A stretch of DNA of 21,001 nt from Paraphysomonas bandaiensis (taxonomy: Eukaryota > Protista > Chrysophyceae), in the NCBI GenBank assembly GCA_965644295.1, contig CBFFRP010000330.1, forward strand, positions 1-21,001, given 5' to 3'. The notes under the pieces were generated by a model. It was not told the origin of the DNA, did not search any database, and saw only the letters and a program-made list of their open reading frames with translations. The stretch's first letter is position 1. Every line of letters begins with the position of its first letter. Shown in pieces: positions 1 through 21,001 of this stretch. The position numbers were made by a program, and so were the translations under genes.

Positions 1-110
1 GTGGTGCCTGAGGTCAAGTTTCGAGCAAGAGCGAGTTTGCCTCTCTTTGGCTGCAAGGACATGGATGTAATGAAGGGTGCTATATGCACAGTACCCGTCG
101 CTTGGTATTT
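1..110 (-). other. N-terminal part of OTU-like domain 3
   Basis: IPSDGYCAYSTLH matches the canonical OTU P-x-D-G-x-C motif (Cys codon 88-90); truncated by the window edge. Confidence 0.6.
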
Positions 111-2934
111 GTTGTTGTGTTCTAACCGCCGAGGGTCTTAGGGTTAGACAATACACCCTGCCCATGGCGCACATGAGTTGCCTGAGGTGGTTATGATCCT
201 TGGGGGACCTTTGTGCAAGGTGGCGTCGGACTCTCGCGGAGAGAGAAACATCAAGTATCTCGGCCTGTGTCGAGATGGTGTCTATCTGAAGGTGCCGTGG
301 ATCTGGGGGATCCTCAATCCTGACGCCTTCTTGTCTGGTACGCAGGTGCTGCAGTAAGTTGGAAATGCGTTGTTTGGTTCGTGCGAGAGCAGTGTTGAGT
401 CGGTACTGGATACCAGGTATGCTAGTAGTGCCTGTCGTAGCAAGAACGTGAAACCCGTGTTGGCTTTGGACGATGTCGTGGGTTGTAACATCTTCCGTGG
501 TGAGGTTCCTTGTAAGGGAGTGCCGGAAGAAAGGCGTTAGCTGCGCCCAGCCCGACACTAGATGTGGTTGATCAGCTTCCCATAACCTGTATGGTATAGA
601 TAGTAGGTCTAGTATTATTTGAAAATCCTGCACGTCCATTTCCAGTTCGCTGTCTGGTTGATTTCTTTGAGAGTGTTCAAATTGTTGCAACCTCATCCGA
701 AGTGATTTTGTGGAGGAAAGTGGTGCCCCTCTTGTCAGGCAGAGTGCTCTGATATGCTTGGAAATGTCGTGCGGGGACTCCACATTGGATTTGATGGAAG
801 TCTGCAACTGCTGTGCTATTTGGAGTGCGCTGCACGTGGAACCCTTCGTATGTTCACATTTTGGAAATGTGGTCATAAAGATGTAGTTGTCTGCCCTGGA
901 GAATTTGTCAATGAAGCTATCCCAATTTGCGATCCTAGTTGGGGTCAGCATTTGCGAATGTATCTCCTGTACTAGTTCTGGCTGTGGAGCGACTGCTATG
1001 GTGTGGAAGTCATCGTATTCCACCCAGTTGTTCAGAACCGTAGAGTGGAATGGCATGAAATCCTGTCCCATAGCGTGTAGGATGGGGCCTGGGGAAGAAC
1101 TCGTGTGAGCTGAGTCTGCTATGTCCGGTGCTGGTGGGTCGCCAGAATTCAACGAGGGGGATGTGGGAGCAGGTGATCTCCATTTGACAGGGAAATAGTC
1201 AGTGAGGAGTGCACGCGGTGGTACAATTTCCTTGGCGTGTTTGGGTACCTTATTCTTGGGGTGGTGTATCGGTCCGTCACCACTATTGTCAGAGGAATAT
1301 GCCTTCCCTTGGCAGTTATGCGAAGGATGGGTACCTACCTGATTCTGGTGATGCCATTGAGCTTCATTAGATTGTTGTGGTAGTGCCTGGAGTATCCGTC
1401 CGCATACAAGTTCAGGGAGTCAGTCCAACAGCGTGTGGAGTTCCAGTTTTACTGGTAGCTTTGTATCTAGGAAGAAATGATCTTCCGAACAGAACACCTC
1501 ATGAAATGGCCGTTCTTGCGTCTTGGGAATGAAGGCTGAGTGAAAGGTAGACCAGTACGCCCAGTTGTGCCCTAGGACTTCTGGTTCTTCCTGCCATACT
1601 CTGAGCCGTATGTTCAGGGTTTCTGCTAAGAAGGCAATGGTATCAGTATGTCCCCATTTCTCTGTGGGTATTCCGATGGCAGTAGGTTTCTTCCTACGAA
1701 GTGCTCTGTGATATGTGGTGAGTAGTTGTTTGAGCTCCTTGCAAATGGCCACAATGTTGAGCTTTTTGGCTTCCTCTGTTGTGTATGAGTTGAGTACTTC
1801 TCTGCTCGTCTGTATGACTTGGAGCAGTTTATCTTTCGAGTCTGGAACATCAGGGTCCAGGTACGGGTATAGCTTATCATTTGAGCTCTTGTAGTGAATG
1901 GAAGCAATTGCCGCCAGCCCGCAGAACCCCGCCATAGGAGTGTTGTTGTACTCTGAATACGCATAATGGCGTGCTACAATCATTTTTCCCTCTTCCAGTG
2001 AGCGACGCACGTGGCTGTGGATAGCGGGAGTGTCGTGTCCCAACTGTAGTAGTTGTGTCACACTGCTGACCATCTCTTCCTGCAAAGCAATGGCAAGCAA
2101 TCCACTGGGCGAATAGAACGTCCATTCCTGGAGGGTGGAGTCTAGGAAAGCAGCTGGTACTGGATGCGGTATGAACACTGGTGGGGTCTCAATCGGTTCT
2201 GCGGAGTACATTTGTTGTGTTATCCCAGAACCATCCTGAGGAGTAGAAGTGCTGGTGGATGGTTTATACGATGTTGCAATCTCGTGTGAGCATAGAGGGC
2301 TGTCACTGTGATCTGTTGAGGACATCACTGCGCAGGCTTGTGGAGTGGACTTTTCGAGGGATGTAGATTGCGGTGGGACTATGTCATGGGGGGACGGCCT
2401 TTGGTTCGTAGTCATGTCATCCCTGGCCGGTCGAGTGGTATCAGGCTGGTGTGGAGGGGCCTCACTTTTCTGCGATTTATGTCGAAGGTGCTCCTTCCAG
2501 ATGAGTTTATTGAATTGACTCATGCGAAGCGCACTGCGTGTCTGTCTGCGTTGGATATGTGGCGGGAGGCATGGGATGGTGCCATCACGATACTGCTGTA
2601 GTTTTCGTGTGCAGCTCTGTCGTCGGAGTTTGTTTCTCTTATACTGAGCAGAGGCAGGTCTCTTTCTCGGTCCATCCCCACTACTGTCGCTTGAATATTC
2701 TGGTCCATGATGCCATCTTGTTGTATGTACACTGCTCGATGAGCGTAGGAATTTGTCTGGCGGTTTGCGCGGTGGTCGGAGGTGATAGTCTAAGGGCGTG
2801 TGTTTCATGTCGAATGTGAGTACGTGTTGAGGATTTAGTAGGTGTGGACTGGGGGGTGACCACTTGGGGGCCTCTTGCAAACTAAATATCTGTGTAGTGC
2901 TGTTCGCCTCCAAAGTGTCCCAGTCCAGTAGAAG
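1..2934 (-). CDS. ORF2-like polyprotein with three tandem OTU-like cysteine protease domains; one in-frame TGA at 1420-1422; open to the window edge
   Basis: Manual translation shows the frame of the 1420..2913 ORF continues past TGA (LLD*LPELVCGRIL...) with no further stop for 473 codons to position 1. OTU-like motifs: TPMAGFCGLAAIA...WGHTDTIAFLAETLNIRLRVW...EDHFF; a diverged second copy (KGSTCSALQIA...DFQIILDLLSIPYRLWEAD...HGFH); and a third starting IPSDGYCAYSTLH. Confidence 0.7.
430..850 (-). other. OTU-like domain 2 (diverged internal duplicate of domain 1, possibly inactive)
   Basis: Aligns by eye to domain 1: TIAFLAETLNIRLRVWQEEPEVLGHNWAY vs DFQIILDLLSIPYRLWEADQPHLVSGWAQ; FHEVFCSEDHFF vs THDIVQSQHGFH. 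Cys codon at 832-834. Confidence 0.5.
1460..1945 (-). other. OTU-like protease domain 1 (candidate Cys codon 1921-1923, His codon 1477-1479)
   Basis: G-F-C-G-x-x-A nucleophile motif, the W-G-x-x-x-x-I-x-x-L-A-x-x-L-N-I-x-L-x-V-W helix/strand motif and a terminal H-F-F match OTU-superfamily motif order. Confidence 0.7.
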
Positions 2935-4703
2935 TCAGTTGGAATCAGACCCGAATATGTCGGAGTCATCGCGCTCGTAGTCTTCCTGATTCCTCTTCGG
3001 TAGGCATTGGCCGACTTTTTGTTTATAGTAATCAAGCACTACGAGTGTGGTCTCTATGTCGATCTTGTAAAGGTCCGTTACCGCGTTTTCCAATCGGGAC
3101 AGAATGGTGTGTACCGTGGTTAGTGGAACTAGATTTGAGGACGCGTGGAGTGCAATTTCGCATAGCTCCGGGCAGGTGGGAGTCGGTGCCGGTGTGGTAG
3201 GGGGGGAAATGTCTACCTGTCTTTGCCGTTTGGGTGTGGAGGAACGAGTAGCTGCTGACCTCTGTTGTGGTACAGTGGTTGGACCAAAGGGCTGGAAGGA
3301 TATGGGAGGCGATATGTGGTGGGAACTGTGGTCCTCAGTATCAATTGCCTCGTTCAGAGCATACAGAAAACGTTGGGAGTGAAGATCTGGAGGAATCGGT
3401 ATGGTATGATAGAGAAGGTGTAAGTTTTCGTCCCCAAGGGCGCTTTTTAGGCAAGTGTTAATACTAGGGCGAGAGAGTTCCCAGGTGAGTTTGATCTTGT
3501 CATTGTTTTATTGTCAAGACAGATGTAAGTTTGTTCCATTAATCGTTCTTTTTCCCTGCGGTTGGTAGTGATCGGGTTACGCGCAGACCATATGATGTCT
3601 TGTATATCCGCAGCAGGGATCCCTATTGCATCACATGCCTTCCATACTTGCACGGGATGCAGGAGTGTTTCCGACTTAAGGGCGATGTGAAATAGGGAAA
3701 GGGTCGGTGCCCAGTTGGATTGCTTAAGCGAGGGTGATTCTCTGCTTGTCATTCGGCAACACAGTGAGCCTAGGCTGAGTTCTACATGTCCACCAACTTC
3801 ATTGTTGAATAGTGCTTTGTAAAATTTCGTTCTTAAGTCTTGGTCTCGAACAGGGTGGTGAAGTAGGAGAATCTGGTAATAGCGATAGGTTTTGTCTGTA
3901 GCCCTAGTTTTGCCTTTGTAATGAGTTAAAGTCCAAAATACTTCGTACGGGGGGAGTGTGGCAAAGCCTCCTGCGCGAAGTAACATGTCCAGTATATTCC
4001 GCAATCTGTAGGCGTGTGCAGGCCTGGTGCTGGCCGAATCAGCAGTCATACCATATATCGCAGCAACGGGTACCAGAGTTGGTTCCTCTATGGAGCGATC
4101 GACGAATTGTTCTCTTGGGGTTTGAAACAGTGACAACTGAACGTGTCGACTTTCTGTCCGTTGACGCCCTTTGTCGTCAACTGAGGTGCCAGTTTCAATA
4201 TGTAGATCAAAACAGAGAGGCGCTGAGAGCATGCATGAATCAGCAGCGACATTCTGTCCCATACCCGGCCTGACCTCGTACCCAGGTCTGCCAAGGGCGA
4301 ATGCTCGTATTACTCTGCTCGCCGTAGGAGCCGGTAAATCTGAGCAAGTTCGCGCATCCTCGGCTGCCCTGAAAGTAGCGAGGTCTTGCGGGGTAGGGAG
4401 TGAAATTGGAAACCCCAATTCATTGATTAGATAATGTATGATTCCAAAGAACGCCGTATCGTCTGTCATTTTCAGGTTGCTGACCACTAGAGTTCGGTAT
4501 TCCATGGCTGGTTCGAAGCTGCTCCATTCCAAGAACGTGCGAGTAGATGGAAGCTGAAGTCTGGGCACGTCGGCTTTGGATTTCTTGAAATCCGATAGGG
4601 CGTTCTTAACATGCGCATCATTGTCCATCAGTTGATGGGAGGGAGGGAGAACAAACTTCGAGGTGTAAGTTCGTTTGGTAGAGGGAGTGGCTCCACGTTG
4701 CAT
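2935..4703 (-). CDS. ORF1-like protein of the mobile element; needs one frameshift between ~3450 and ~3507
   Basis: The 3447..5420 ORF becomes protein-like from MQRGATPSTK (ATG at 4703), with an RRM-like start YRTLVVSNLK. A -1 frame (NDKIKLTWELSRPSINTCLKSALG...EDYERDDSDIFGSDSN*) is open from 3507 to TGA at 2935-2937, the same frame as ORF2. Confidence 0.5.
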
Positions 4704-5595
4704 TGTATCAGGTGATTTTTGTAAGGAGTACGTATTGATTAAATATGCTTCCAAAGGGTGGTTATATAAGAGGTGCACATATAAGTGGTAAATGCGGTGG
4801 TGATAGTGTGTTGTGTAGTCGACGAGGTTGACTGGGAGAGTACAGCTTGATACGCTGTATACTGTGTAGAGCGACTGTATTCGCGCATACCACGTAGAAA
4901 GTATAGTAGTCATCCAATGAGATGTGTAGACTATAGGAATGATAGGTAAGCCGTGAGAGGTGGAGGATTGCTTGGTGAGTGCACCATAGATTGTCCATGT
5001 GGAGTGGGTTTGTGCGGTCGCCAAGAAATGGTCCTGTCTTACAAGGTAGCGGGGTCGATGGAGAGCAAAGGTGTTAGGGAATGAACAAGTGCACCTTTTC
5101 CTAGTGCCTACCCGCACGAGCCATGCGATGAGTGGTTGTAACCGTAGAGAACGGAGTGTGGTGCAGATACATCTACAAGGGAAATGTCCAATAGGGACTG
5201 ACAGCGCTGTAGTGGTGCAGGCACTTAGTTTAACTGATGGCGTTAGTGAAGGGAAAGGTTGCCAAGCCACGTTATCTAACGGGGAGCATGTACAACATGG
5301 TAAGACAAGATGTTTGTCGGCAGTGTGGTGTGTTTCAAAATGTTGCCCTGCTTGGAGAGAAGGGAACAGTCTGAGCCCGGACCCGCTGATGGGACACAAC
5401 CACGGTCTCAATAAAGACATTGAGCTTGGAGCGAGCTAAAAAGGTATAACTTTTTGTTGAACTGTGTTTTTACCAGAAGAGAGAGAGAATTTAATATATT
5501 ACAGGATGATTACTACCGATAAACACCAAAAAGCTTCTAGTACAGCTAGTACGTACTTTGGAGTAGGCTGTAGTTAATAGGTTTATTGTTTATAC

Positions 5596-6340
5596 CAGGG
5601 ATAGGGAACAATATATTGTATTGCAATACATTGTACAATATATTGTAAAATATATTGATTGGTGGACTGGTCAAATATTCCATCAATACTGTTTCTGTTA
5701 AAAGGCCTCACAATACTATTGCAATATATTGCAATCAATATTATGATAGTCATATAAGTGAAGATTCTCAACTGTTGGGTGCAAAATGGATATAAAAACC
5801 GAGAAATTGATAACAACATTACAAAGGATAATGAAGCTGATGTTGACTATGCGACTAAAAATCTTCAGTCAGCTCAAAAAATTAAGAAACGTACAGATCC
5901 ACGAGTCATTAACGGTTGCTTGGCCCTGATATGTACTTCCAATACATGGGAACGTCTGTTCAGCACATCTAAACATATTATATCAGTGTTGCGCAAAAGT
6001 ATCCATCCTACTTAATATGCTGTTGTTTCTGAAAGCTATTCGACAGTTATGGCCGGATACTAGCATATTTCAATTAATTCTGTGGATGAATATGGTGACG
6101 TCACCGATGATGGCTCAGAGGATGAGAACGAGGTGGATTTTTAGTAGCTATAAGCAGCAGTTGGTTTATGTGATCTTTATGACTAATACTAAAAAATGAA
6201 TTCTACGGATGTGTTTATCTACTGATTAGTCATTCTAATATATTGTAATTGTATTGTGGGACCGGTTTAAAAAATCCATCAATACTATAGATGGAACGCT
6301 ATCTAACAATAGTATTGCAATATATTGTTCCCTATCCCTG
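5596..6340 (+). mobile_element. Non-autonomous (internally deleted) hAT-superfamily DNA transposon, 745 bp
   Basis: Perfect 23-bp TIRs CAGGGATAGGGAACAATATATTG (5596-5618; reverse complement at 6318-6340). Identical 8-bp TSD GTTTATAC at 5588-5595 and 6341-6348. Subterminal CAATAT/CAATAC-ATTG palindromic repeats and an internal hAT dimerisation-domain remnant. Confidence 0.93.
5910..6060 (+). pseudogene. Remnant of hAT transposase C-terminal dimerisation domain
   Basis: ICTSNTWERLFSTSKHIISVLRKSIHPT / MLLFLKAIRQLW matches the hATC pattern S-x-x-x-E-R-L-F-S...R-x-x-L-x-P...L-L-F-L-K; broken by a stop and a frameshift. Confidence 0.85.
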
Positions 6341-6521: not shown

Positions 6522-7991
6522 TTAACTGCACACATACTGTTCTGTCTGAAATATATCACACAGGCAAAATCCGTATAACGGCCTATTTACGCAGACGGAT
6601 CACTCACGTCCACCCACACTATCCTCCACTCCATCTTGTCCCCTAAAGAAATATCCCCAGCCAATTGCCATTGCGTTATCTGCATTAAATATATTAGTGT
6701 GAGCCGTCAAATAGCCAACACAAATATTTCATGTGGCTTCAACACCTTAATACTATATGCAAACGAAACATGTACCTTTGGCATTCTAGGGAGACTGGGA
6801 TCACGGAATACAGTCGCAGCATCAAAGCGAACACCTATATATAGCATCGTCTTTCTCTCGTGCAGCTTTGGCAGTGGTGTATGGTCACCCTCATCTTCCT
6901 CCCCAGCCCCGCATATCTTTTCGGCTCGATGATGCTTCACAGGTGAGCTGGAAGGCTGGGAATTTCCGAACACGCCTGCCCCCACTACTCCAAAGCTGGG
7001 GTTGGGGAACAGAGAAGGCGATATATCCTCTTTAAACCCCGGGGTATTTTCTACAGCATGACACTAAACATAGAAAACTGAAGTACCCAGACTTTTTACC
7101 ATCAACGACAATTACTTCTAATTGTAAAGGCGTCACGCTTACGAGTTCATCCCTGAGAATTGACAATCGAGGGTCTCCTCCAAAGTCTGTGTTGTTCATA
7201 GATAAGTATTCGTTGAACACTTCCTCTGAAGTGACCTCTCTAAGTTCCTCAGCCAGTTCCGAGGATTCTATCTCTCTGGTAGAGGAATCATATCACATAC
7301 ACCAATATATAGCAATCCGCATTACCCATTAGCATATTGTTTAAATTCCGTAGAATATATGATATCACGAACTTTCATATAGGCCATCTTGGCGCCTTCA
7401 AGGAACTCAAAAATATTGAACCCATATTTCTCCAGGAGAGGGTGCTGTAAAAAAAAGCAGTTGAAAATTTGTTACACATAAAGGGCATTAGACTCACATG
7501 TGTTTCTGTATATATGTATAGTGCATGGAACATCCCTATACCCAACTTCCTCCGCAAGTCATGAAACTTATCCGACCCCTCCCGAGTGAGCACCGACAAA
7601 GCAGTGTCCCATCTCTTGACGTGCTTAAACTCCCAATCAAGATCAGCATCAGTCTTCTTCTTGTTTACGCTAAAAGCACAGAGTGAGAAATCCGGCATGA
7701 TGCGTTTACAGAGACAGATATATATGACGCGTGCCTCGAATATAATAACAGTACAGATATACGCATGACTACAGAAGAATTTTAATATCAGAATGATATG
7801 AATACAGACATACAGCACATGTGATACGACTACAGAGCATGATACACATATAAGTCATATGTAACTATGTACTTTGGAGAGAAGAAACGAACGCTCTGTC
7901 TGCAGTCATTCACTCTGACGCTCACAGCCATCTTAACGTTACTCACAACACCCCTGCGAAATAATCTCTCTGCTCGAAGCATCATCATCAT
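6522..7991 (-). CDS. Spliced gene, mitochondrially targeted Tim44-like domain protein (MAIP1-like), ~318 aa; predicted exons 7991-7873, 7669-7498, 7444-7326, 7275-7100, 7050-6776, 6679-6608, 6545-6522
   Basis: Six GT-AG introns (203, 53, 50, 49, 96, 62 nt) join fragments in frame (957 nt total); two donors are GTGAGT. The N-terminus MMMMLRAERLFRRGVV...RQSVRFFS looks like a mitochondrial presequence. KYGFNIFEFLEGAKMAYMKV...LREVTSEEVF, IGVRFDA and WQLAGDISLGDKMEWRIV match Tim44/MAIP1-like motif order. The first and last introns are least certain. Confidence 0.72.
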
Positions 7992-8367
7992 GGTGCGCTC
8001 TATAGTGATGAGACTGGCATATACAGGAGTAACTCCAGCTCTTATGATCAATCCCCATCATCATGCAGGAGGCAGATGCTCTTGTCTTGTGTTCGACGTA
8101 CTGCTGCACTGTACTGCTGCACTGTACTGCTGTACTGTGTATTCCGTATCCCTTAACCGACTTTGATTGTCCCACACAACGTCCTGAACTGCTGCCAGGA
8201 AATATCCTGGAAGCGGACTACACATAGCCGTATATCCATATATCCATATGCTGCATACACATACATAACAAGCAACACACGCCACCAGCAGAGAATTAAT
8301 TTGATCACATGTCACTGATTCACTCTACAGTATTCATATTCACTACTAATCACAAGAGAGCAGCACG
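7992..8367. promoter_or_regulatory. Putative bidirectional promoter between the divergent Tim44-like and NYN-PARP genes
   Basis: 376 bp between divergent ATGs. Contains CTGTACTG-type short repeats (~8098-8137) and an imperfect palindrome CCAGGAAATATCCTGG (8195-8210) followed by AAGCGGACTACACAT, which is retained in the otherwise divergent paralogous promoter. Confidence 0.5.
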
Positions 8368-11300
8368 ATGACGATTCAAGCTATTCTGGATCGTATCGGT
8401 GTGGACTCACTGGATGAACTGGAGAGAGAAATAGAAACCTTGCGAAGTCAAGTGCAAGATCTCGAGGACAGCGGGCTGGGCTCATCACAGAGAGCTAACA
8501 ACTTCAAAGAGAGTTTGGACGAATGCCTGAAGGCCAAAGATGCTTGCGAATCTCTATCTACGCCCTCTGAAGGAGTTATTGACTGTATATTGGACGACTT
8601 GGGTGAGAGCAGCGTCGAAAGCTTACAAGAGCGGCTCGCTGAATATCGCGATCAGCTTGATAAGTTTGATAAAGAAGGGAAATCATCATCTGTACGAGCT
8701 CACAATGTCCGAGACATGGTTGTAACTTATGAGCATGCGCTATCCAAGATCAAGGCTTTCCAAGCGCAGCATAAAGCGGCCACTATTACACGCGCGTCGG
8801 AAGGAGATATTGACTGTATATTGGACGACTTGGGTGAGAGCAGCGTCGAAAGCTTACAAGAGCGGCTCGCTGAATATCGCGATCAGCTTGATAAGTTTGA
8901 TAACCAGGGGAAATCGTCGTCTGTACGAGCTCGCAATGTCCGAGACATGGTTGTAACTTATGAGCATGCGCTATCCAAGATCAAGGCTTTCCAAGCGCAG
9001 TGTCAAGCGGCCACTACTACACGCGCGTCGGAAGGAGATATTGACTGTATATTGGACGACTTGGGTGAGAGCAGCGTCGAAAGCTTACAAGAGCGGCTCG
9101 CTGAATATCGCGATCAGCTTGATAAGTTTGATAAAGAAGGGAAATCGTCGTCTGTACGAGCTCGCAATGTCCGAGACATGGTTGTAACTTATGAGCATGC
9201 GCTATCCAAGATCAAGGCTTTCCAAGCGCAGTGTCAAGCGGCCACTACTACACGCGCGTCGGAAGGAGATATTGACTGTATATTGGAAGAGTTGGGTGAG
9301 AGTAACGTCGAAAGCTTACAAGAGCGGCTCGCTGAATATCGCGATCAGCTTGATAAGTTTGATAACCAGGGGAAATCGTCGTCTGTACGAGCTCGCAATG
9401 TCCGAGACATGGTTGTAACTTATGAGCATGCGCTATCCAAGATCAAGGCTTTCCAAGCGCAGTGTCAAGCGGCCACTACTACACGCGCGTCGGAAGGAGA
9501 TATTGACTGTATATTGGAAGAGTTGGGTGAGAGTAACGTCGAAAGCTTGCAAGAGCGGCTCGCTGAATATCGCGATCAGCTTGATAAGTTTGATAACCAG
9601 GGGAAATCGTCGTCTGTACGAGCTCGCAATGTCCGAGACATGGTTGTAACTTATGAGCATGCGCTATCCAAGATCAAGGCTTTCCAAGCGCAGTGTCAAG
9701 CGGCTCCTACGACAAATATGGATATTACCCCATACTTTGTGCATATATTTCACGATGTGGAGAATTGTAGGTGTGAAGGGCGATTGGGTCTGAATGCCAG
9801 AGTCCTAGTTAAATACACGTTAGAGAAGATCATGTGCGCTTTTCTAGGAAGTATGGAAGCAGTGAATGTTATGGATTTCGATCGAGATTTGTCATGGAAG
9901 TGGGATTTTTGCATCAGACGCGACAGCAATAATGTTTTTCATCCATCGAAATTATTCGTTCGAGATATGGACACTGTTGGGGCAATGCTTATCGATGTAC
10001 CGGGTATGAAGAAAGGAGAGGTTGACAAGCGCATTGAGCGTAATATGAGAACATTTGCAGCTGATTACCAAAAAATGAATGACGATGCGAAACAAAAAAC
10101 TGCAGCAGTCCTCATCGCCAGTGATGGTGACTACTCCTCTGTTGTAGACGATCTGAAACGCATGGGCATACTTGTGATTTTGATTTATGACCCTGCGGAA
10201 TGTTCTGATGTTTTCAAATCCATTGTGAGCCCTCGCTACTCTTTAGGTGTGTGGCAAGAAATCCTTGATGCCAGTAAACCTATGGCGCCTGGCGTTAATA
10301 ACTCTACTCGAGAAACAGTTCCAAATCCACAGAGTGATAGGGAGTATGCCTCTCTAGTTTTTGCCCTTGCCGATTTCATGTATGTAAGGGGACAGTCCAG
10401 CTGTTTCTATCCCGTTTACATGAAAGAGCTACTTAAAGAGAATCCAGAGATCGGGGCGATTAATACTAAATATGGGGGTTTGGAAAGTTTTTGTGGTAGA
10501 AGTAATGGAGCTCTTTGCTACCAGGCTAATAATCAGGGAGGATTAGTATCTGTTGCTTTGCACTTTCTACTGGAGTTTTGGGTACGCTTAGAGGGAGGAA
10601 AGGTTCCCGCCAATAGAATAGGTACGTTATAATTACGCTTATTAAATTGTTATATCTATTCCTAGTATACCTATTCCTAGTCACCTTCAAGTCTGACTGC
10701 AAATTGTGATGCCTGTAGGTAAATTCTATAAGAAATTTCCACGGTGCGCGGAAAATAATGTGGTCAAAAGCCAATTTAGAGAAAGTGGGGGGGCTCCTGC
10801 ACTCTGTTCTGCCACTGGTGGAAGTATGATATGGATCCAATGTTCCGACGATAGCACAGTGGGATATGGATACTTTGAATGCACAGCAGGTAACATCGAC
10901 AAGACTACCAATTCGTGCATGTGGACTATTAGCTGGCTGCTCCACAACCACCTCAAGTACCTCTCAAAGCCAACTGTTGATGAGGTGTTGTTAAGGGTGT
11001 CACCCAATGTTGTTCTGGAGCTCTGTGGTGATTCTCAGGGAGCACGCTTACGACTATCGATTTCACAGCACTTTGAATCTTCACAGCAATCAATTTCTGA
11101 TCCAGATGCTCTGTTGAAAGAAAGCAGATTGTGTGTAGAGGAGTTTCTAAGAGACTTACAGATCTCACCACTAGCCGAAGTGCCGGTGCCACGCTCAGTT
11201 CTTTTGGGTGACACTGAATTGCGAACGATAAGGAAACAATATCAAGTGTACTGCAATGTGTACAAGCGTAGGCAGGAGAACACGTGTGGCGATGATGCCA

Positions 11301-14300
11301 TTTTTATGCTTCTTCCTAAACATATGTCAGCAGGACCGAATGTACCGGCGAATCGATCTCCTCAACGACACCCAAATAAGAGTGCTTATGATATAGAGGC
11401 GTTTGCGTATTCACACCTAGTGAAACTAGGCATCAACCGCGTTACTCATATTGTGAAATTGAACATACGAAAGGAACCAGTGCTACATGCGTATATTGTG
11501 CTATCTCGAGATGCACTTGACCAGGATAGGAGAAACAGGCTCCTCAGTTCACAGTCATCCAATGGTGTGTCATTTTGTGAATCACTGCCTAGTCCTGAAG
11601 CGCGTGAAGTTGAGTCTATTCAACTTATTTATCCTTCCAGCAATGCGGAGGGGGCGGAAAAAGTCATGGATCGTATTAACGAACTTCGTCATTGCGAACG
11701 GGAATTAGATGTATTCGATGCCTCGGGTGGTCCTCCAGACACTTCCTCCTACCGCCCTGCTGTCGAACGATTCTTTTTTATGGACGCAGTCTGGTGCTTT
11801 TTGATTAGTGAGATCAATGATATTGCACCTGGATTACAGCTCGAAATATCTCAGCGTCAACAAAAGCGCGTCATAGTTGTACGTGGTCTAGAAAAGTTGG
11901 TTGAGCTTGCGGAGACACGTTTAAGAGAACGGCGTCGGAAAATGTTGGAAAAAACCATTGCAATTCCGAGGGATAAACAGAGCGATGACCTCAATCACGC
12001 ACTTAAAAACTACCTGAAATCCCTTTTTTCCAGCTGGTTTAGAGCATACAGTTCTGACCAAGACGGTACGTCTTCGCTGGATACTAGATCCAACAGTGAC
12101 GAAACGTCTGTTTCTAGTGTAAGTTTTTTATAATATTTGCATTCCTCATTTCGTCGTTAATGGTATCGTACGTAGTCTACATCAGTCCGGATGCCTCTGG
12201 CGAAATACTATGTAGCACGGAGAGAGGTTTGTATTGTGGCACTGCATGAGCGCCAGGACCAATGGCAGCTGTTTGTCAAAGCAGCCAAAAATATTATTGA
12301 CAGCTTTACAAGGAGAGAAGTATCTGTGAGTGGTGAAAATCCAACTCGATTCAATAGAGCTCTCAGTAAATTTGATCTATTGGATCATAAATATGACAAG
12401 GATACCAAGAATATTATTTTGCATGGTGCCAGGGAATCGGTTTTGGGAGCTCTGGCTTACATTGAACAAGAAATGAATGGACAGCAACCTGAGTCTGCTG
12501 ATATCGACTGTTCGGAATTCCCGCACAGCGATAGAATTGCCAGATATCTTCGTCGAGGTGGTGAGGGATGTGCTTTAGCACAATTACAGAACTTTGTGTC
12601 TCAGAGTTTTAAATCGGTGACTCTAACGATACCCCAGGCGGCTAACTGTGAATCCAATTCCAACAACTCCACAATTCTTACGCTTCGTGGTCCTAAAAAC
12701 ATGATACCAGCAGCTATTGATGCAACGAAGGTGGAATTACGAAAAATTGTAGCTGGTCTCGAGTTATCAGTGATAGACTGCTTTCAAGATTATCAGGTGA
12801 AATGGTTGATGCAATATGCGACGCATATAGGCGATGAAAATGATACTGTGGTGGATTTTGTGAGTGAAGACGTATTTTCAACCGTTGGTGATCCGCAGTT
12901 GAAATGCCAGTGCGAGATGGGTCCAATATCTGTTTACGTAGTTCATTGTGATTTTATTGAGACTGCATCTTATGGATGCGACACAATTGTCAACCCCGCC
13001 AACTCACATTTGAAGCATGACGGTGGTATTGCTAAGGCAATATCAGATGCTGCTGGCCCCGAACTTGTTAGGGAGTGTAATTCCAAAAGTCATATTCCTG
13101 CTGGTGGAGCGACAGCGACGGGATCGTATCGTTTGCATGATCACGGATTCAAGAATATTATACATACGGTGGCTCCGGTATGGTCTTCTTCTTCAGACGG
13201 ATCCGTGAGGATAGGCGAACGTCATTTATTGCATAATGCTGTGAAGAATGCCTTGTATGAAGCTCAGTTAAAAGGCGCGGAGGCCGTAGCGATTCCAGGT
13301 GTTGGTATGGGTTTATTCAAGTGGCCGGTGGATGATGCTGCGACAGAAATCGTACTTGCAATCGGAGAGTTCATTCATGACCAAACAGCGGCTGATGACG
13401 CCCAGAAATCTCTGAAAAAAATAGTTCTTTTTGACAACATTGAGTCCAGGGTATCTGCGTTCGTATCAGCACTAAAGGCATTACAGAATCACACCATTGG
13501 TGAGTCGGTGTCCATCCCTACAGTGCCTGAGTGTCAGTGGTTCCGGAAAGTGTGGCATCATGAGGTATCGGAACAGCCAGATGGGGCAGTTCGTACCTTG
13601 TTTGACGAATCTTTCGTTGAGCATGTTGTTGCTCCGTATGATTATGATCAAGTTATGCAAATGGAGCGAGCATATCTAGCTGGAGACTCGTCGGTTATTC
13701 TAGTCAGTGATGCCTACGGAGCAAAAAACAATAAAAAATACAAAATTGACTTTACACTAAAAACACAAACAACGATTCCTTTCAATAATAAATTTTCTGT
13801 ACGACCGATATTCCGTTCATCCGTAATCGATCCTAAAAATATCCCGATGTACAATGAGCGGTGTAAAGAACAAGTACTCGCTAGACCTGGCATTGTTGAG
13901 AGGGTTATACCTACGAACTTAAAAACTGGTGTTTTTGTAAAAAATCGAGATGGGGCACTGACTCAAAACTCCTTACAAAGAGAGAATGGTGTGGCAATAT
14001 TCGGTAATTATTTTGTCATTTATTGTCGTGATTGAATGTAAATATATTTTGTGTCCATAGGTACCTCTGATGCGATAAAGAAAACTATAACTGCTCTCGA
14101 TAATTTTATTTTGGAAAATAAATCTTCCAAAACTGTTGAGTTACGTCTCCTGCGAACTTCCAACGTTCAATTCGAAACCGCACTTCATGAGCTTCAGGAA
14201 CTAAACAGAGAAATGAATGTCGTGATCAGCTCCAGCAATGATGCCGACTGGAATGTTATTGTTGAAGGATTAGGGGAAGTGGTAGTGCTTCGGGCGCAGA

Positions 14301-14977
14301 CGAAAGTGCTTGAATATGAGAGGAATAAAGTCTATAATGACAGCCGTGCCATTTCTCTACCTGATACCTGGGGGTATGAGTTATCTGATGACGATTGCTT
14401 CCCTGACCCTTCACTCAAAGAGCTAGAGCCAATTAGCAGCGAGTACATCGAGGCTGCTAAATGCTTTGGAAATGACAATTTTAAGGCAGACATAGTACGC
14501 ATTGAACGTGTGCAAAACGTAGAGCTCTACCGTCTTTACGACACGAAGCGCAAAGAGGTTGCTCGTAAAAACGGAGGCAATGCGAATGAGATTCTTCTGA
14601 AGCATGGAACCAGTGATACACTTCCGGAAACTGTCTGGAATAGTGGTTCGAGGACAAACGCATATGGTTTTGATATTCGTTGGTCTAGTGACAAAAATTA
14701 TTATGGTAGAGGATCGTACTTTACTGACGATACTGGTTACGCAAATCGCTACTCGTATCAATGCGGGAACTCAGACGAGAGGCAGATTTTTCTGGCATAT
14801 GTTGCCCAGGGTTGTATTGAGCAGAAGGATACCAAAGATAAGAGCATAAAAACCCCTTCAGCGGGTTACCAGTCTGTGCGTGGACCGATTGATGGGTCTA
14901 TTCAAGGGCTTGTTGTTTACGAACTGCATCAAAGCTATCCTGCTTACCTTGTTACGTACAAAAGAGCGCCTAAGTAA
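8368..14977 (+). CDS. Multidomain repeat-NYN RNase-LOTUS/wHTH-RRM/KH-Macro-WWE-PARP protein (MARF1-like nuclease fused to a PARP14-like module), ~2132 aa; exons 8368-10621, 10719-12118, 12176-14003, 14061-14977
   Basis: Three GT-AG introns (10622-10718 GTACGT..TGTAG, 12119-12175 GTAAGT..CGTAG, 14004-14060 GTAATT..CATAG) remove each ORF stop and join the four ORFs in frame (6399 nt = 2133 codons). Domain motifs are listed in the sub-features. Confidence 0.85.
8566..9717 (+). repeat. Five near-identical 231-bp (77-aa) coding tandem repeats, preceded by one degenerate unit at the N-terminus
   Basis: Unit SEGDIDCILDDLGESSVESLQERLAEYRDQLDKFD(KE/NQ)GKSSSVRARNVRDMVVTYEHALSKIKAFQAQCQAATTTRA repeats with a 231-nt period. 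Residues 1-65 (IQAILDRIGVDSLDELEREI...GSSQRANN) are a diverged copy. Confidence 0.97.
9733..10270 (+). other. NYN domain (LabA/DUF88/MARF1-type PIN-like RNase), catalytic acidic residues apparently intact
   Basis: VHIFHDVENC (cf. xFWDxENC), KKGEVDKRI (cf. K-x-x-x-D), and VLIASDGDYSSVVDDLKRMGILVILI (cf. LISGDxDFxxxxxxLRxxGxxVILI). Confidence 0.85.
10339..10880 (+). other. Two tandem winged-helix (LOTUS/OST-HTH-like) repeats spanning intron 1
   Basis: After splicing, LADFMYVRG...ELLKENPEI...YGGLESFCGRSNGALCY aligns with LEFWVRLEGGKVPANRIGKFYKKFPRC...SGGAPALCSATGGSMIW. The position after NYN matches MARF1-type architecture; the fold is inferred. Confidence 0.4.
11170..12860 (+). other. RRM-like segment plus an array of degenerate KH-like domains
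   Basis: Repeated KH C-terminal strand-Gly-helix signatures: VIVVRGLEKLVELAETRL, NIILHGARESVLGALAYI, ILTLRGPKNMIPAAIDAT; GxxG-like RRGGEG. RRM-like THIVKLNIRKEPVLHAYIVLS. Confidence 0.55.
12920..13480 (+). other. Macrodomain (MacroD/PARP9-14-like ADP-ribose binding or hydrolase)
   Basis: DTIVNPANSHLKHDGGIAKAISDAAGPEL, TGSYRL, IIHTVAPVW, VAIPGVGMGLFKWP, LKKIVLF. Confidence 0.95.
13532..13816 (+). other. WWE domain
   Basis: QWF...PYDYDQVMQMERAY...KYKIDFTLKTQ...RPIFR matches the WWE pattern W...Y-D-x5-E-x-A-Y...Y-x-I-D-F-x-x-x-x-Q...R-x-I-x-R. Confidence 0.8.
14357..14977 (+). other. PARP/ARTD catalytic domain, PARP10/12/14-like, predicted mono-ADP-ribosyltransferase
   Basis: LPDTW, SSEY, IVRIERVQNVELY, NEILLKHGT (His codon 14603-14605), GFD, YGRGSYFT, YANRYS, RQIFLAYVAQG, YQSV, GLVVY, QSYPAYLVTY. 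No catalytic Glu at the third triad position. Confidence 0.95.
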
Positions 14978-15126
14978 CTAGGTGAGCTGTACAAAGCAAT
15001 ACGTTTGAGTTACTGTTCGTTTAGGATACTAGTTTATTCTTCGTTTTATTTTATGCACTCTTTGCTTAATAATTCTGTTTTCTCCATATTTCCGTTTTTT
15101 CATCAACCTTTCCGTGGTTGGGTTAG

Positions 15127-16728: not shown

Positions 16729-17261
16729 GTGCGTAGCGCTGAATATGCAGTGAGAACCCGAGTGGGAAGCGCTGAACTAAGCAATGTGTACATTGGTAGA
16801 GGTGCGCGGTCGCAACACTCAGCAGCACTCACTAGACGGTCAAACGCGGTGATTAGTTACGCTGTCAATATGGGGAATTCAGATTGGAAGCAGCTTCCAA
16901 AGTCCGATCAGTTTGGGGTGATCAACTGGACGAAGACACTCAAGGTATGGCGTATGCACAAAAATCGAAACAAACAATATAGGTCTGGAAGAGCGTCCAA
17001 TTAGACCTGCTGACAATGCGCCGATAGCACTCCAAAACAAGTACAATGGGCACTTCGACAAGTGGCTCTAGCAGAAGGCCACATGCATCAGCTCCATATA
17101 TTGACACAGTTCAACCTGTTGCGGAAGCGCTCGAAATAGTTGATCAATATCTCCGAGAGAAGGACATCCTTCCATATGATGATCCCGAGAAAGACACTTG
17201 GCCAGTGAGCTTATTACTAGATTGGTTGAAAGATTCGTGGCGAAACTCAGTACGAATTGGT
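16729..17261 (+). pseudogene. Possible decayed coding fragment of unknown origin, cut by the duplication junction
   Basis: More GC-rich than its flanks, with protein-like pieces in shifting frames (...INWTKTLKVWRMHK, IRPADNAPIALQNKYNGHFDKWL, VAEALEIVDQYLREKDILPYDD...LLLDWLK). No family recognised. Confidence 0.25.
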
Positions 17262-17731
17262 TGCATGGAACATCCCTATACCCAACTTCCTCCGCAAGTC
17301 ATGAAACTTATCCGACCCCTCCCGAGTGAGCACCGACAAAGCAGTGTCCCATCTCTTGACGTGCTTAAACTCCCAATCAAGATCAGCATCAGTCTTCTTC
17401 TTGTTTACGCTAAAAGCACAGAGTGAGAAATCCGGCATGATGCGTTTACAGAGACAGATATATATGACGCGTGCCTCGAATATAATAACAGTACAGATAT
17501 ACGCATGACTACAGAAGAATTTTAATATCAGAATGATATGAATACAGACATACAGCACATGTGATACGACTACAGAGCATGATACACATATAAGTCATAT
17601 GTAACTATGTACTTTGGAGAGAAGAAACGAACGCTCTGTCTGCAGTCATTCACTCTGACGCTCACAGCCATCTTAACGTTACTCACAACACCCCTGCGAA
17701 ATAATCTCTCTGCTCGAAGCATCATCATCAT
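17262..17731 (-). pseudogene. Truncated 5' fragment of the Tim44-like gene (exon 1 and most of exon 2)
   Basis: Matches 7522-7991; breaks inside exon 2 at 17262 and reads into unrelated sequence (MFHATNSY*). Confidence 0.75.
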
Positions 17732-18129
17732 GGTGCGCTCTATAGTGATGAGACTGGCATATACAGGAGTAACTCCAGCTCTTATGATCAATCCCCATCA
17801 TCATGCAGGAGGCAGATGCTCTTGTCTTGTGTTCGACGTACTGCTGCACTGTACTGCTGCACTGTACTGCTGTAATAGACTGCTGTACTAGACTGTACTG
17901 CTGTACTGCTGCGTGACAACTGACTACGATTGCTACACCACCGTACGCGTACAGCCGGGAAATTTTCTGGAAGCGGACTACACATGCCCGTATTTTATAC
18001 AGCAGAGTACTGCTGCATACACATACATAACAAGCAACACACGCCACCAGCAGAGAATTAATTTGATCACATATCACTGATTCACTCTACAGTATTCATA
18101 TTCACTACTAATCACAAGAGAGCAGCACG

Positions 18130-21001
18130 ATGACGATTCAAGCTATTCTGGATCGTATCGGTGTGGACTCACTGGATGAACTGGAGAGAGAAATAGAAAC
18201 CTTGCGAAGACAAGTGCAAGATCTCGAGGACAGCGGGCTGGGCTCATCACAGAGAGCTAACAACTTCAAAGAGAGTTTGGACGAATGCCTGAAGGCCAAA
18301 GATGCTTGCGAATCTCTATCTACGCCCTCTGAAGGAGTTATTGACTGTATATTGGACGACTTGGGTGAGAGCAGCGTCGAAAGCTTACAAGAGCGGCTCG
18401 CTGAATATCGCGATCAGCTTGATAAGTTTGATAAAGAAGGGAAATCATCATCTGTACGAGCTCACAATGTCCGAGACATGGTTGTAACTTATGAGCATGC
18501 GCTATCCAAGATCAAGGCTTTCCAAGCGCAGTGTCAAGCGGCCACTACTACACGCGCGTCGGAAGGAGATATTGACTGTATATTGGACGACTTGGGTGAG
18601 AGCAGCGTCGAAAGCTTACAAGAGCGGCTCGCTGAATATCGCGATCAGCTTGATAAGTTTGATAAAGAAGGGAAATCATCATCTGTACGAGCTCGCAATG
18701 TCCGAGACATGGTTGTAACTTATGAGCATGCGCTATCCAAGATCAAGGCTTTCCAAGCGCAGTGTCAAGCGGCCACTACTACACGCGCGTCGGAAGGAGA
18801 TATTGACTGTATATTGGAAGAGTTGGGTGAGAGCAGCGTCGAAAGCTTACAAGAGCGGCTCGCTGAATATCGCGATCAGCTTGATAAGTTTGATAACCAG
18901 GGGAAATCGTCGTCTGTACGAGCTCGCAAGGTCCGAGACATGGTTGTAACTTATGAGCATGCGCTATCCAAGATCAAGGCTTTCCAAGCGCAGCATAAAG
19001 CGGCTCCTACGACAAATATGGATATTACCCCATACTTTGTGCATATATTTCACGATGTGGAGAATTGTAGGTGTGAAGGGCGATTGGGTCTGAATGCCAG
19101 AGTCCTAGTTAAATACACGTTAGAGAAGATCATGTGCGCTTTTCTAGGAAGTATGGAAGCAGTGAATGTTATGGATTTCGATCGAGATTTGTCATGGAAG
19201 TGGGATTTTTGCATCAGACGCGACAGCAATAATGTTTTTCATCCATCGAAATTATTCGTTCGAGATATGGACACTGTTGGGGCAGTGCTTATCGATGTAC
19301 CGGGTATGAAGAAAGGAGAGGTTGACAAGCGCATTGAGCGTAATATGAGAGCATTTGCAGCTGATTACCAAAAAATGAATGACGATGCGAAACAAAAAAC
19401 TGCAGCAGTCCTCATCGCCAGTGATGGTGACTACTCCTCTGTTGTAGACGATCTGAAACGCATGGGCATACTTGTGATTTTGATTTATGACCCTGCGGAA
19501 TGTTCTGATGTTTTCAAATCCATTGTGAGCTCTCGCTACTCTTTAGGTGTGTGGCAAGAAATCCTTGATGCCAGTAAACCTATGGCGCCTGGCGTTAATA
19601 ACTCTACTCTAGAAACAGTTCCAAATCCACAGAGTGATAGGGAGTATGCCTCTCTAGTTTTTGCCCTTGCCGATTTCATGTATGTAAGGGGACAGTCCAG
19701 CTGTTTCTATCCCGTTTACATGAAAGAGCTACTTAAAGAGAATCCAGAGATCGGGGCGATTAATACTAAATATGGGGGTTTGGAAAGTTTTTGTGGTAGA
19801 AGTAATGGAGCTCTTTGCTACCAGGCTAATAATCAGGGAGGATTAGTATCTGTTGCTTTGCACTTTCTACTGGAGTTTTGGGTACGCTTAGAGGGAGGAA
19901 AGGTTCCCGCCAATAGAATAGGTACGTTATAATTACGCTTATTAAATCTTTATACCTATTCCTAGTCACCTTCAAGTCTGGCTGCTAATTGTGATGCCTG
20001 TAGGTGAATTCTATAAGAAATTTCCACGGTGCGCGGAAAATAATGTGGTCAAAAGCCAATTTAGAGAAAGTGGGGGGGCTCCTGCACTCTGTTCTGCCAC
20101 TGGTGGAAGTATGATATGGACCCAATGTTCCGACGATAGCACCGTGGGATATGGATACTTTGAATGCACAGCAGGTAACATCGACAAGACTACCAATTCG
20201 TGCATGTGGACTATTAACTGGCTGCACCACAACCACCTCAAGTACCTCTCAAAGCCAACTGTTGATGAGATGTTGTTAAGGGTGTCACCCAATGTTGTTC
20301 TGGAGCTGTGTGGTGATTCTCAGGGAGCGCGCTTACGACTATCGATTTCACAGCACTTTGAATCTTCACAGCAATCAATTTCTGATCCAGATGCTCTGTT
20401 GAAAGAAAGCAAATTGTGTGTAGAGGAGTTTCTAAGAGACTTACAGATCTCACCACTAGCCAAAGTGCCGGTGCCACGCTCAGTTCTTTTGGGTGACACT
20501 GAATTGCGAACGATAAAGAAACAATATCAAGTTTACTGCAATGTGTACAAGCGTAAGCAGGAGAACACGTGTGGCGATGATGCCATTTTTATGCTTCTTC
20601 CTAAACATATGTCAGCAGGACCGAATGTACCGGCGAATCGGTCTCCTCAACGACACCCAAATAAGAGTGCTTATGATATAGAGGCGTTTACGTATTCACA
20701 CCTAGTGAAACTAGGCATTAACCCCGTTACTCATATTGTGAAATTGAACATACGAAAGGAACCAGTGCTACATGCGTATATTGTGCTATCTCGAGATGCA
20801 CTTGACCAGGATGGGAGAAACAGGCTCCTCAATTCACAGTCATCCAATGGTGTGTCATTTTGTGAATCACTGCCTAGTCCTGAAGTGAGTGAAGTTGAGT
20901 CTATTCAACTTATTTATCCTTCCAGCAATGCGGAGGGGGCGGAAAAAGTCATGGATCGTATTAACGAACTTCGTCATTGCGAACGGGAATTAGATGTATT
21001 C
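18130..21001 (+). CDS. Second paralogue of the NYN-(Macro-WWE-PARP) gene, partial; exon 1 18130-19921, intron 19922-20003, exon 2 20004 to >21001
   Basis: Near-identical to copy A, with intact frame, splice sites and NYN catalytic residues, and three 77-aa repeats. The Macro/WWE/PARP part lies outside the window and is inferred. Confidence 0.85.
18328..19017 (+). repeat. Three 231-bp (77-aa) coding tandem repeats in paralogue B
   Basis: Same unit as in copy A; the exon-1 ORF is 600 aa vs 754 aa, a difference of exactly 2 x 77. Confidence 0.97.

Follow-up and report, generated by a model that had tools for sequence, protein, structure and literature searches.

We analyzed a 21,001-nucleotide (nt) stretch of the Paraphysomonas bandaiensis genome (contig CBFFRP010000330.1, hereafter “the window”) and found that its positions 8368–14977, on the + strand, form one expressed, spliced gene with four exons and a 2132-amino acid (aa) product. 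In the predicted protein, helical repeats, a putative nuclease domain of the NYN (PIN-like) type closest to that of MARF1, and a LOTUS-like winged helix precede a body resembling PARP14, i.e., a likely array of KH-type folds, a macrodomain, a probable WWE domain, and an ADP-ribosyltransferase (ART) domain of the PARP type. The combination of NYN and PARP14-like parts is undescribed in the literature and databases that were searched. An earlier interpretation made from the letters alone (hereafter “the sequence-only reading”) had proposed this gene as a candidate RNA-directed innate defense protein, joining an RNA sensor, ADP-ribose writer, reader, and possible eraser, and a nuclease in one chain.

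Four open reading frames are spliced into one transcript

Four + strand open reading frames (ORFs) lie in succession at 8368–10632, 10706–12133, 12191–14035, and 14051–14977, and the short, AT-rich gaps between them start with GT and end with AG. All GT/AG combinations near these gaps were tried, and a single set of GT..AG introns yielded exactly 2132 aa: intron 1 at 10622–10718 (97 nt), intron 2 at 12119–12175 (57 nt), and intron 3 at 14004–14060 (57 nt), all on the + strand. The resulting spliced frame comprises 6399 nt, i.e., 2132 codons, with one terminal stop. It is divided into exon 1 at 8368–10621 (aa 1–751 and the first base of codon 752), exon 2 at 10719–12118 (the KH/RRM-like array), exon 3 at 12176–14003 (a KH-like region, the macrodomain, and the WWE domain), and exon 4 at 14061–14977 (a spacer and the ART domain, with the stop at 14975–14977). 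Two alternative forms of intron 2, 12117–12185 and 12123–12185, would also leave the frame open; both were absent from this organism’s RNA junctions and were rejected.

The splice model was evaluated against public RNA-derived contigs from several studies aligned to positions 9000–14990; these contigs give neither expression levels nor transcript ends. Introns 1 and 2 were both spliced out of a 3840-nt X1 contig spanning 9681–13673, and intron 3 was also removed in X1 and X4 contigs. Overall, intron 1 was skipped in X1 and X4, intron 2 in X1, X4, X5, and X7, and intron 3 in X1, X4, and X7. The X5 data are a true metatranscriptome, in which a 1067-nt contig crosses the intron-2 junction with the intron absent. 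X7, a poly(A) metatranscriptome, holds a relative of roughly 92% identity with intron 3 skipped at the identical junction, intron 2 skipped either at the identical one or from a point two bases upstream of its donor, and, near intron 1, a 103-nt skip that has ends other than GT..AG and is interrupted by extra letters. The indels listed for this relative measure 3, 3, and 27 nt, together with a compensating pair of one base each, and leave the reading frame intact. Parts of the gene were found in RNA libraries from several independent marine studies. None of the RNA contigs over 9000–14990 terminates at the ORF stops, and the transcripts are spliced, which argues against four separate genes. 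The in-frame splicing of four ORFs into a protein of ~2132 aa, as proposed in the sequence-only reading, is thus borne out by the GT..AG model and by RNA contigs from which all three introns have been removed.

The N-terminal region carries a MARF1-type NYN domain and a LOTUS-like domain

The putative NYN nuclease domain lies at 9730–10275 on the + strand (aa ~455–636). Its Pfam NYN (PF01936) score of 21.3 bits falls under the gathering threshold of 24.2 bits, and a single-sequence phmmer search of the NYN piece against the PDB returned no match. When aa 451–751 were compared exhaustively with 1.84 billion representatives by phmmer, 51 relatives were recovered, and the homologs P0002, P0004, P0008, and P0041 exceed the Pfam threshold, at 24.7–30.9 bits. 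The only significant PDB sequences for the profile of this protein family were MARF1 NYN domains (6e-11 and 1e-10), and the profile alignment pairs the D-x-E-N-C, K-x-A-x-D, and S/T-D motifs of the two. Given that these four homologs pass the threshold and that the profile matches MARF1, we interpret the sub-threshold score as divergence rather than absence of the domain. Across an alignment of 24 of the relatives, H462, D463, W512, D588, and W629 are invariant, with E465, C467, K548, D553, and D586 nearly so. Among them, D463, E465, D553, D586, and D588 align with the MARF1 motifs and make up the acidic cluster of a PIN-like nuclease (D-x-E-N in strand 1, a D in the next helix, and D-x-D behind the central strand).

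Structural comparison led to the same assignment. An AlphaFold (AF2) model built on the family alignment (predicted local distance difference test [pLDDT] 88) displayed a three-layer alpha/beta PIN-like fold, for which the best Foldseek matches in the PDB were the mouse and human MARF1 NYN domains (5yaa: E 3e-6, probability 1.00, template modeling [TM] score 0.82 by target), followed by the LabA-like protein VPA0982. With VIA-align, the model matched mouse MARF1 (5yaa) at Z 19.4 and a root-mean-square deviation of 1.9 Å over 148 of 150 residues, and VPA0982 (2qip) at Z 14.5, with the next unrelated chain at Z 8.0. The PIN domains of Regnase and KHNYN were not among the top structural matches in either Foldseek or VIA-align. 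The NYN motifs recognized in the sequence-only reading therefore hold up at the level of both family profile and structure, with the acidic residues intact, and its placement of KHNYN in a different NYN/PIN subfamily is confirmed by profile and model, which assign the domain to the MARF1/LabA subtype and not to the KHNYN/Regnase one.

In the model, the region that follows (10327–10563, + strand; aa ~654–732) forms a helical domain of its own that includes a beta-hairpin. Every PDB row that VIA-align placed on this region is a LOTUS domain (MARF1 5yad at Z 7.0 with 71 of 71 residues aligned, Tejas at 7.0, TDRD7 at 6.6, and TDRD5 at 6.4), and winged-helix families, OST-HTH among them, are suggested by its language-model features. 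Since these Z values are moderate and Pfam returned no match for aa ~654–732, we refer to the domain as LOTUS-like.

Upstream of the NYN domain, the protein carries a helical tandem repeat of 231 nt (77 aa) present in 4.9 copies that are 97% alike (8569–9704, + strand; detected with TRF and as repeat families). The copy number of this repeat varies among paralogs, and a similar N-terminal segment was found in P0002 and P0003. Pfam matches in exon 1 to HBM, YscO, LMP, and similar families included no single significant stretch and were discarded as coiled-repeat noise.

Compared to MARF1, the protein shares the NYN subtype, with its D-x-E-N, K-x-x-x-D, and S/T-D motifs, and an adjacent LOTUS-like winged helix. 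The two differ in that MARF1 carries two RRMs and a long LOTUS array with no ADP-ribosylation domain, whereas here one LOTUS-like domain is followed by a PARP14-like body, and NYN identity is about 17–19%. The features of a MARF1 ortholog (tandem RRMs, multiple LOTUS domains, and no other enzymes) are lacking, with no Pfam match to RRM or OST-HTH. Bacterial LabA-like NYN proteins such as VPA0982 share the fold and an S-x-D-x-D-F motif; they are small proteins, either standing alone or of the NYN-OST-HTH kind, and have no macro, WWE, or ART domain. Nor is the protein of the KHNYN/N4BP1/Regnase type: the domain order is reversed, and KHNYN and N4BP1 appeared only as matches to the KH folds of exon 2.

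A probable, diverged array of KH-type folds spans exons 2 and 3

The central part of the protein consists of a probable array of small alpha/beta domains in exon 2 (10907–11959, + strand) that continues into the first 245 aa of exon 3 (12176–12910, + strand). Pfam searches of exon 2 and of eight family members, at E up to 1, returned noise only and no family. The exon-2 model (pLDDT 70.6) resolved several small alpha/beta domains, and an Atlas shape search with it retrieved multi-KH proteins in nine of 10 rows (PARP14 KH clusters, Vigilin, N4BP1, BICC1, and TDRKH) and a PARP14-like protein in the tenth; the top Foldseek row was the KH platform of GLD-3. VIA-align located type I KH folds at exon-2 aa 63–146 and 323–413 (MEX-3C KH1 at Z 8.0; SF1, Vigilin, KSRP, FBP, and N4BP1; Z 7–8) and an RRM/ferredoxin-like fold between them at aa 191–289 (nucleolin RRM, Z 6.6). 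An hhalign comparison of the exon-2 family with one fish PARP14 found nothing (probability 1%), so that fold is the evidence for the probable KH identity of exon 2. A search for proteins homologous to exon 2, limited by its length window, returned only a 265-aa fragment that was 95% identical. For the exon-3 part, Pfam gave weak matches to KH_PARP14_3 (0.008), KH_PARP14_6, and KH_1, and language-model features scored 0.90 with KH in 10 of the 10 best matches.

A single GXXG-like loop (GGEG, in exon 3) was found across the whole array, and none in the exon-2 domains. This region is thus likely an array of KH-type folds, with RNA binding at most putative. The “RNA-binding array” of the sequence-only reading stands in part, as a diverged KH-type array with one RRM-like fold; canonical RRMs are absent, with no Pfam RRM match in the protein and none detected at its N-terminus, and the KH domains are mostly degenerate.

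The C-terminal half resembles PARP14

The macrodomain lies at 12911–13495 on the + strand (aa ~1463–1657) and is of the MacroD/PARP14-macro-1 type, with a Pfam Macro match of 1.2e-25 (90 bits). Its best PDB sequences are PARP14 macrodomains 1–2 (3vfq, 1.5e-24) and macrodomain 1 (3q6z), after which come hydrolases of the MacroD type and several RNA viruses’ macrodomains; against fish PARP14-like proteins, the best match is the first of their three macrodomains. N1494, G1501–G1502, and the N-x6-G-G-I and G-L-F motifs are present. These two motifs, as found in MacroD, Mac1, and PARP14 macrodomain 1, are compatible with ADP-ribose binding and mono-ADP-ribosylhydrolase activity. An “eraser” activity may thus be inferred from the similarity to PARP14 macrodomain 1.

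The probable WWE domain (13619–13777, + strand; aa ~1699–1751) scored 19.8 bits in Pfam against a cut-off of 21.1, and collinear homologs exceed this cut-off at the same place (P0041, 25.6 bits; P0009, 35.7 bits; P0021, 36.7 bits). In the X7 relative, a 27-nt in-frame insertion falls at window position 13521, i.e., in the linker between macrodomain and WWE, and the two 3-nt deletions fall elsewhere; this linker seems to be variable in length.

The ART domain occupies 14387–14968 on the + strand (Pfam PARP: 4e-14, 53 bits), and its closest solved domains are those of PARP12 (6e-14), PARP15, and PARP14, then tankyrases. Aligned with the family and with fish PARP14, residues H2009, Y2047, and G2110 occupy the H-Y-E positions, and the family overall reads H-Y-[G/A]. 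Since the catalytic glutamate is absent, chain elongation is not expected and mono-ADP-ribosylation is a reasonable prediction, i.e., the domain is predicted to be a mono-ART at most. Mono-ADP-ribosylation has been shown for clade-3 PARPs (PMC2964712). In one environmental relative, P0037 (1133 aa), the NAD+ site of the ART is without its His and Tyr (“LKFGS”, no Y); this protein has the look of an inactive, PARP9/PARP13-like form inside the NYN-PARP family.

Overall, a macrodomain, a probable WWE domain, and an ART domain occur in one chain with intact core residues, as had been read from the letters: Macro and PARP are recognized by Pfam with catalytic-type residues kept, and the WWE match is just sub-threshold here and above threshold in homologs. 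No signal or membrane domain was detected by Pfam in the 2132-aa protein, which is predicted to be of cytosolic type.

Compared to PARP14 (ARTD8/BAL2), the order of probable KH array, macro-1-type macrodomain, probable WWE domain, and ART is the same, the ART has His and Tyr and no catalytic Glu in both, and both belong to tandemly duplicated gene families (PMC4245714). The differences are one macrodomain here versus three in PARP14, the lack of detectable canonical N-terminal RRMs, a spacer of about 180 aa between WWE and ART, a third triad residue that is G/A here and L in PARP14, and the N-terminal coiled repeat and NYN-LOTUS module, which are absent from PARP14. With the best structural and sequence matches being MARF1 and PARP14 themselves, the earlier comparison with these two proteins was apt.

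A family of similar fusions in uncultured marine eukaryotes

Several long matches of the NYN search carry the same parts in the same order on a single ORF, based on Pfam scans and phmmer collinearity, and at least five divergent environmental eukaryotic proteins share this layout: P0008 (1797 aa; NYN, Macro, PARP), P0021 (2024 aa; NYN, Macro, WWE, PARP), P0041 (1762 aa; NYN, KH, Macro, WWE, PARP), and P0009 (1941 aa; Macro, WWE, PARP, with NYN found by phmmer), along with P0003 (1679 aa), which stops behind its macrodomain. All four exons of the window gene have collinear matches in P0008 and P0009, at 20–36% identity to the window protein and to each other, and from such divergence among collinear relatives the fusion is old and maintained. 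All long relatives come from environmental assemblies (ENA, JGI, and Logan); none has an NCBI or UniRef entry, and the names given at source are limited to “hypothetical protein” and an automatic macrodomain label. Two lie on metagenome contigs adjoining eukaryote-type genes (citrate synthase for one; Ras and Rieske PetC for the other), and one fills a 6.5-kb mRNA-sized contig. Two further environmental proteins of about 1000 aa, P0002 and P0004, have the N-terminal helical segment, NYN-LOTUS, and an exon-2-like array without Macro or PARP; these represent either a natural form that is shorter or, in genomic contigs, ORFs truncated by an intron.

When a profile of six full-length members was searched, the next best matches were fish PARP14-like proteins (E 1e-100 to 1e-68), and no named protein uniting NYN and PARP was found in this shared-word-dependent, non-exhaustive search. 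In full-text literature, we found no description of NYN fused with macrodomain, PARP, or WWE, nor of MARF1 with PARP14, and NYN was mentioned in a PARP context only for KHNYN. As for a possible widespread, already described, single-copy family, no such description was found, and the gene is multi-copy. The novelty that the sequence-only reading had left unsearched holds within the literature and databases that were searched.

According to previous surveys, PARPs are lacking in Thalassiosira pseudonana and Phaeodactylum, and the ancestor of macro-PARPs belongs to the unikont lineage (PMC2964712, PMC4245714). The host here is an alga, outside the lineages with described macro-PARPs, and by its domain content the family extends PARP14-like macro-PARPs beyond these lineages. 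Scans of viral contigs gave no evidence for a viral origin of the gene: the NYN family found a 29-residue match only, and one short match in metagenome contigs. The viral match, at 8001–8087 of an IMG/VR contig, surrounds an S-x-D-x-D motif and is probably part of an unrelated NYN protein.

Copy-number turnover and uneven constraint among paralogs

The 62.5-Mb genome assembly (669 contigs) holds four copies of the gene. A tandem second copy follows in the window itself (17262–21001, + strand; ATG at 18130), 96–98% identical to positions 7522–11716 and cut by the contig end, with three 77-aa repeat units versus five in the window gene; the true array at this contig end may be longer, or may have been collapsed in assembly. 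The copy on contig C321 looks intact and is 79–94% identical by exon. In the copy on contig C620 (8849–13994), the frame is broken in the NYN region and in exons 2 and 3, and TAG and TAA stops lie inside the macro-proximal part; barring assembly errors, this copy is probably a pseudogene. The gene family accounts for every Pfam Macro match found in the genome, the matches found being a lower bound.

We estimated the ratio of non-synonymous to synonymous substitution rates (dN/dS; Nei-Gojobori) between the window and C321 copies, which is one pairwise comparison over short segments. The ratio was 0.12 for the NYN domain, 0.36 for the macrodomain, 0.54 for the ART domain (with low dS), 0.65 for the N-terminal repeats, and 0.54–1.64 for four segments of the exon-2 array. 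This shows a strongly constrained NYN domain and an array that is the fastest-changing part of the gene, with positive selection not proven.

Elsewhere in the genome, five further PARP-domain loci were found on C235, C71, C386, C457, and C291, and NYN loci on C80, C223, and C297. Seven loci match the silicon-transporter family (C348, C406, C398, C150, C405, C298, and C149). Within the window, the neighboring ORFs at 1420–2913, 3447–5420, 7375–7818, 17046–17426, and 17679–18077 have no Pfam family at E ≤ 0.001. Positions 1–6000, where the long ORFs 1420–2913 and 3447–5420 lie on the − strand, display a strong GC skew (about +0.2) and a negative AT skew.

A candidate RNA surveillance protein and alternative functions

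PARP14 and other clade-3 macro-PARPs are antiviral enzymes that interferon induces, with an RNA-related mechanism that has yet to be clarified. We consider RNA surveillance or defense in genetic conflict, i.e., against RNA viruses or retroelements, as the most likely role of the window gene, at about even confidence. Such a protein would act on RNA. Its LOTUS-like domain and part of the KH array would hold RNA or recruit partner proteins, the 77-aa repeats may mediate self-association, and the NYN domain would cut single-stranded RNA using a metal held by its Asp cluster. In its C-terminal half, the protein would work as PARP14 does: the ART would mono-ADP-ribosylate its own chain, neighboring proteins, or RNA ends that are phosphorylated, the macrodomain would bind or remove the ADP-ribose mark, and the WWE domain would read ADP-ribose. 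Nuclease action and ADP-ribose signaling could thereby be coupled in one particle. Consistent with parts of this scheme, macrodomain 1 of PARP14 is a hydrolase and the PARP14 ART modifies phosphorylated RNA and DNA ends (PMC13224862, PMC10450202).

Three considerations led us to rate a defense role highest. RNA that is foreign or selfish is what both architectural parents, PARP14 and MARF1, act on. In animals, a clade-3 PARP and a PIN-like nuclease act together in trans, as do ZAP (PARP13) and KHNYN, where an RNA sensor of the PARP family likewise joins a PIN-like nuclease found beside KH domains (KHNYN/N4BP1). The animal pair differs in being separate polypeptides instead of a single chain, in a nuclease from the Regnase/ZC3H12-like branch instead of the MARF1/LabA-type NYN, and in ZAP having an inactive ART and reading RNA through CCCH fingers, whereas the ART here is probably active. 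Finally, copy-number turnover is typical of conflict genes, as in animal PARP14 clusters, and PARP14-like genes frequently occur as adjacent duplicates (PMC4245714). Here, the four copies, the recent tandem duplication, the one probable pseudogene, and the faster-evolving KH array point circumstantially to defense. ADP-ribosylation-gated RNA cleavage against viruses or transposons, as suggested in the sequence-only reading, would be a conjecture with the same circumstantial support.

Several observations weigh against a defense role. MARF1 and PARP14 have non-immune roles too, and both defense and gating are read from architecture. All but one of the KH-like domains lack GXXG, so the array may bind proteins instead of RNA, as diverged KH domains of PARP14 and other proteins can (PMC10450202). 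An unusual residue, G/A, fills the third position of the triad, and ART activity is putative. dN/dS is <1 almost everywhere, and the pattern is explicable by relaxed constraint after duplication, which is no proof of an arms race. No Pfam-recognizable mobile element or virus gene adjoins the gene.

The best-surviving alternative, which we regard as possible and on balance doubtful, is a housekeeping or developmental post-transcriptional regulator that degrades particular cellular mRNAs (in stress granules or life-cycle transitions), with ADP-ribosylation serving self-regulation only. MARF1 in oocytes and PARP14 with tristetraprolin provide models for such a function. The match of the NYN-LOTUS head to MARF1, a regulator of cellular mRNAs, would fit this alternative, as would purifying selection on NYN and macrodomain, expression in ordinary field metatranscriptomes, and conservation of the family in several protists. 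It is harder to reconcile with a multi-copy gene that has a very recent tandem duplicate, one decaying copy, and a variable repeat number, or with the apparent absence of the family from model diatoms reported as PARP-less (PMC2964712), a patchiness unusual for a core function.

We find it improbable that the protein is chiefly an RNA-end ADP-ribosylation machine, in which the NYN domain would leave 5′-phosphate ends, the ART would cap them with ADP-ribose and so block translation, ligation, or processing, and the macrodomain would reverse the mark, the main ART substrate being RNA. The ART is closest to the PARP14 clade and shares a chain with a nuclease, and catalytic fragments of PARP14 and PARP10 ADP-ribosylate phosphorylated single-stranded RNA and DNA ends in vitro (PMC10450202); nonetheless, this alternative is purely inferential and the G at the third triad position is unusual. 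Least probable is a scaffold whose enzymes are dead, or else a gene heading to loss, i.e., with at least one of NYN, macrodomain, and ART inactive and the protein acting as a binder only or not at all. The broken C620 paralog, the P0037 relative without ART His and Tyr, and the degenerate KH domains are set against a window copy that keeps all catalytic-type residues, strong purifying selection on NYN, relatives with in-frame indels only, and a gene that is transcribed and correctly spliced.

Returning to RNA surveillance and defense, a more specific form can be proposed tentatively, and as a whole we deem it rather unlikely: a single-chain innate immune effector of marine protists, either pre-metazoan or convergently assembled, in which foreign RNA, of an RNA virus or retroelement, would trigger cleavage licensed or marked by mono-ADP-ribosylation, possibly with ADP-ribose capping of the 5′-phosphate ends made by the nuclease. 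If true, antiviral immunity based on macro-PARPs would also exist beyond animals and Amoebozoa, and the protein would be the first nuclease known to be under in-cis control by ADP-ribosylation.

Taken together, these data reveal a transcribed PARP14-like gene family in an alga and several uncultured marine eukaryotes, compared to the animal/amoebozoan origin given in surveys (PMC2964712, PMC4245714). The natural fusion of ADP-ribosylation and nuclease domains is a strong hint of a functional link between the two, and offers a compact system for asking if RNA cleavage is controlled, or RNA ends are modified, by ADP-ribosylation. The gene is also a candidate for the little-known antiviral repertoire of its host.

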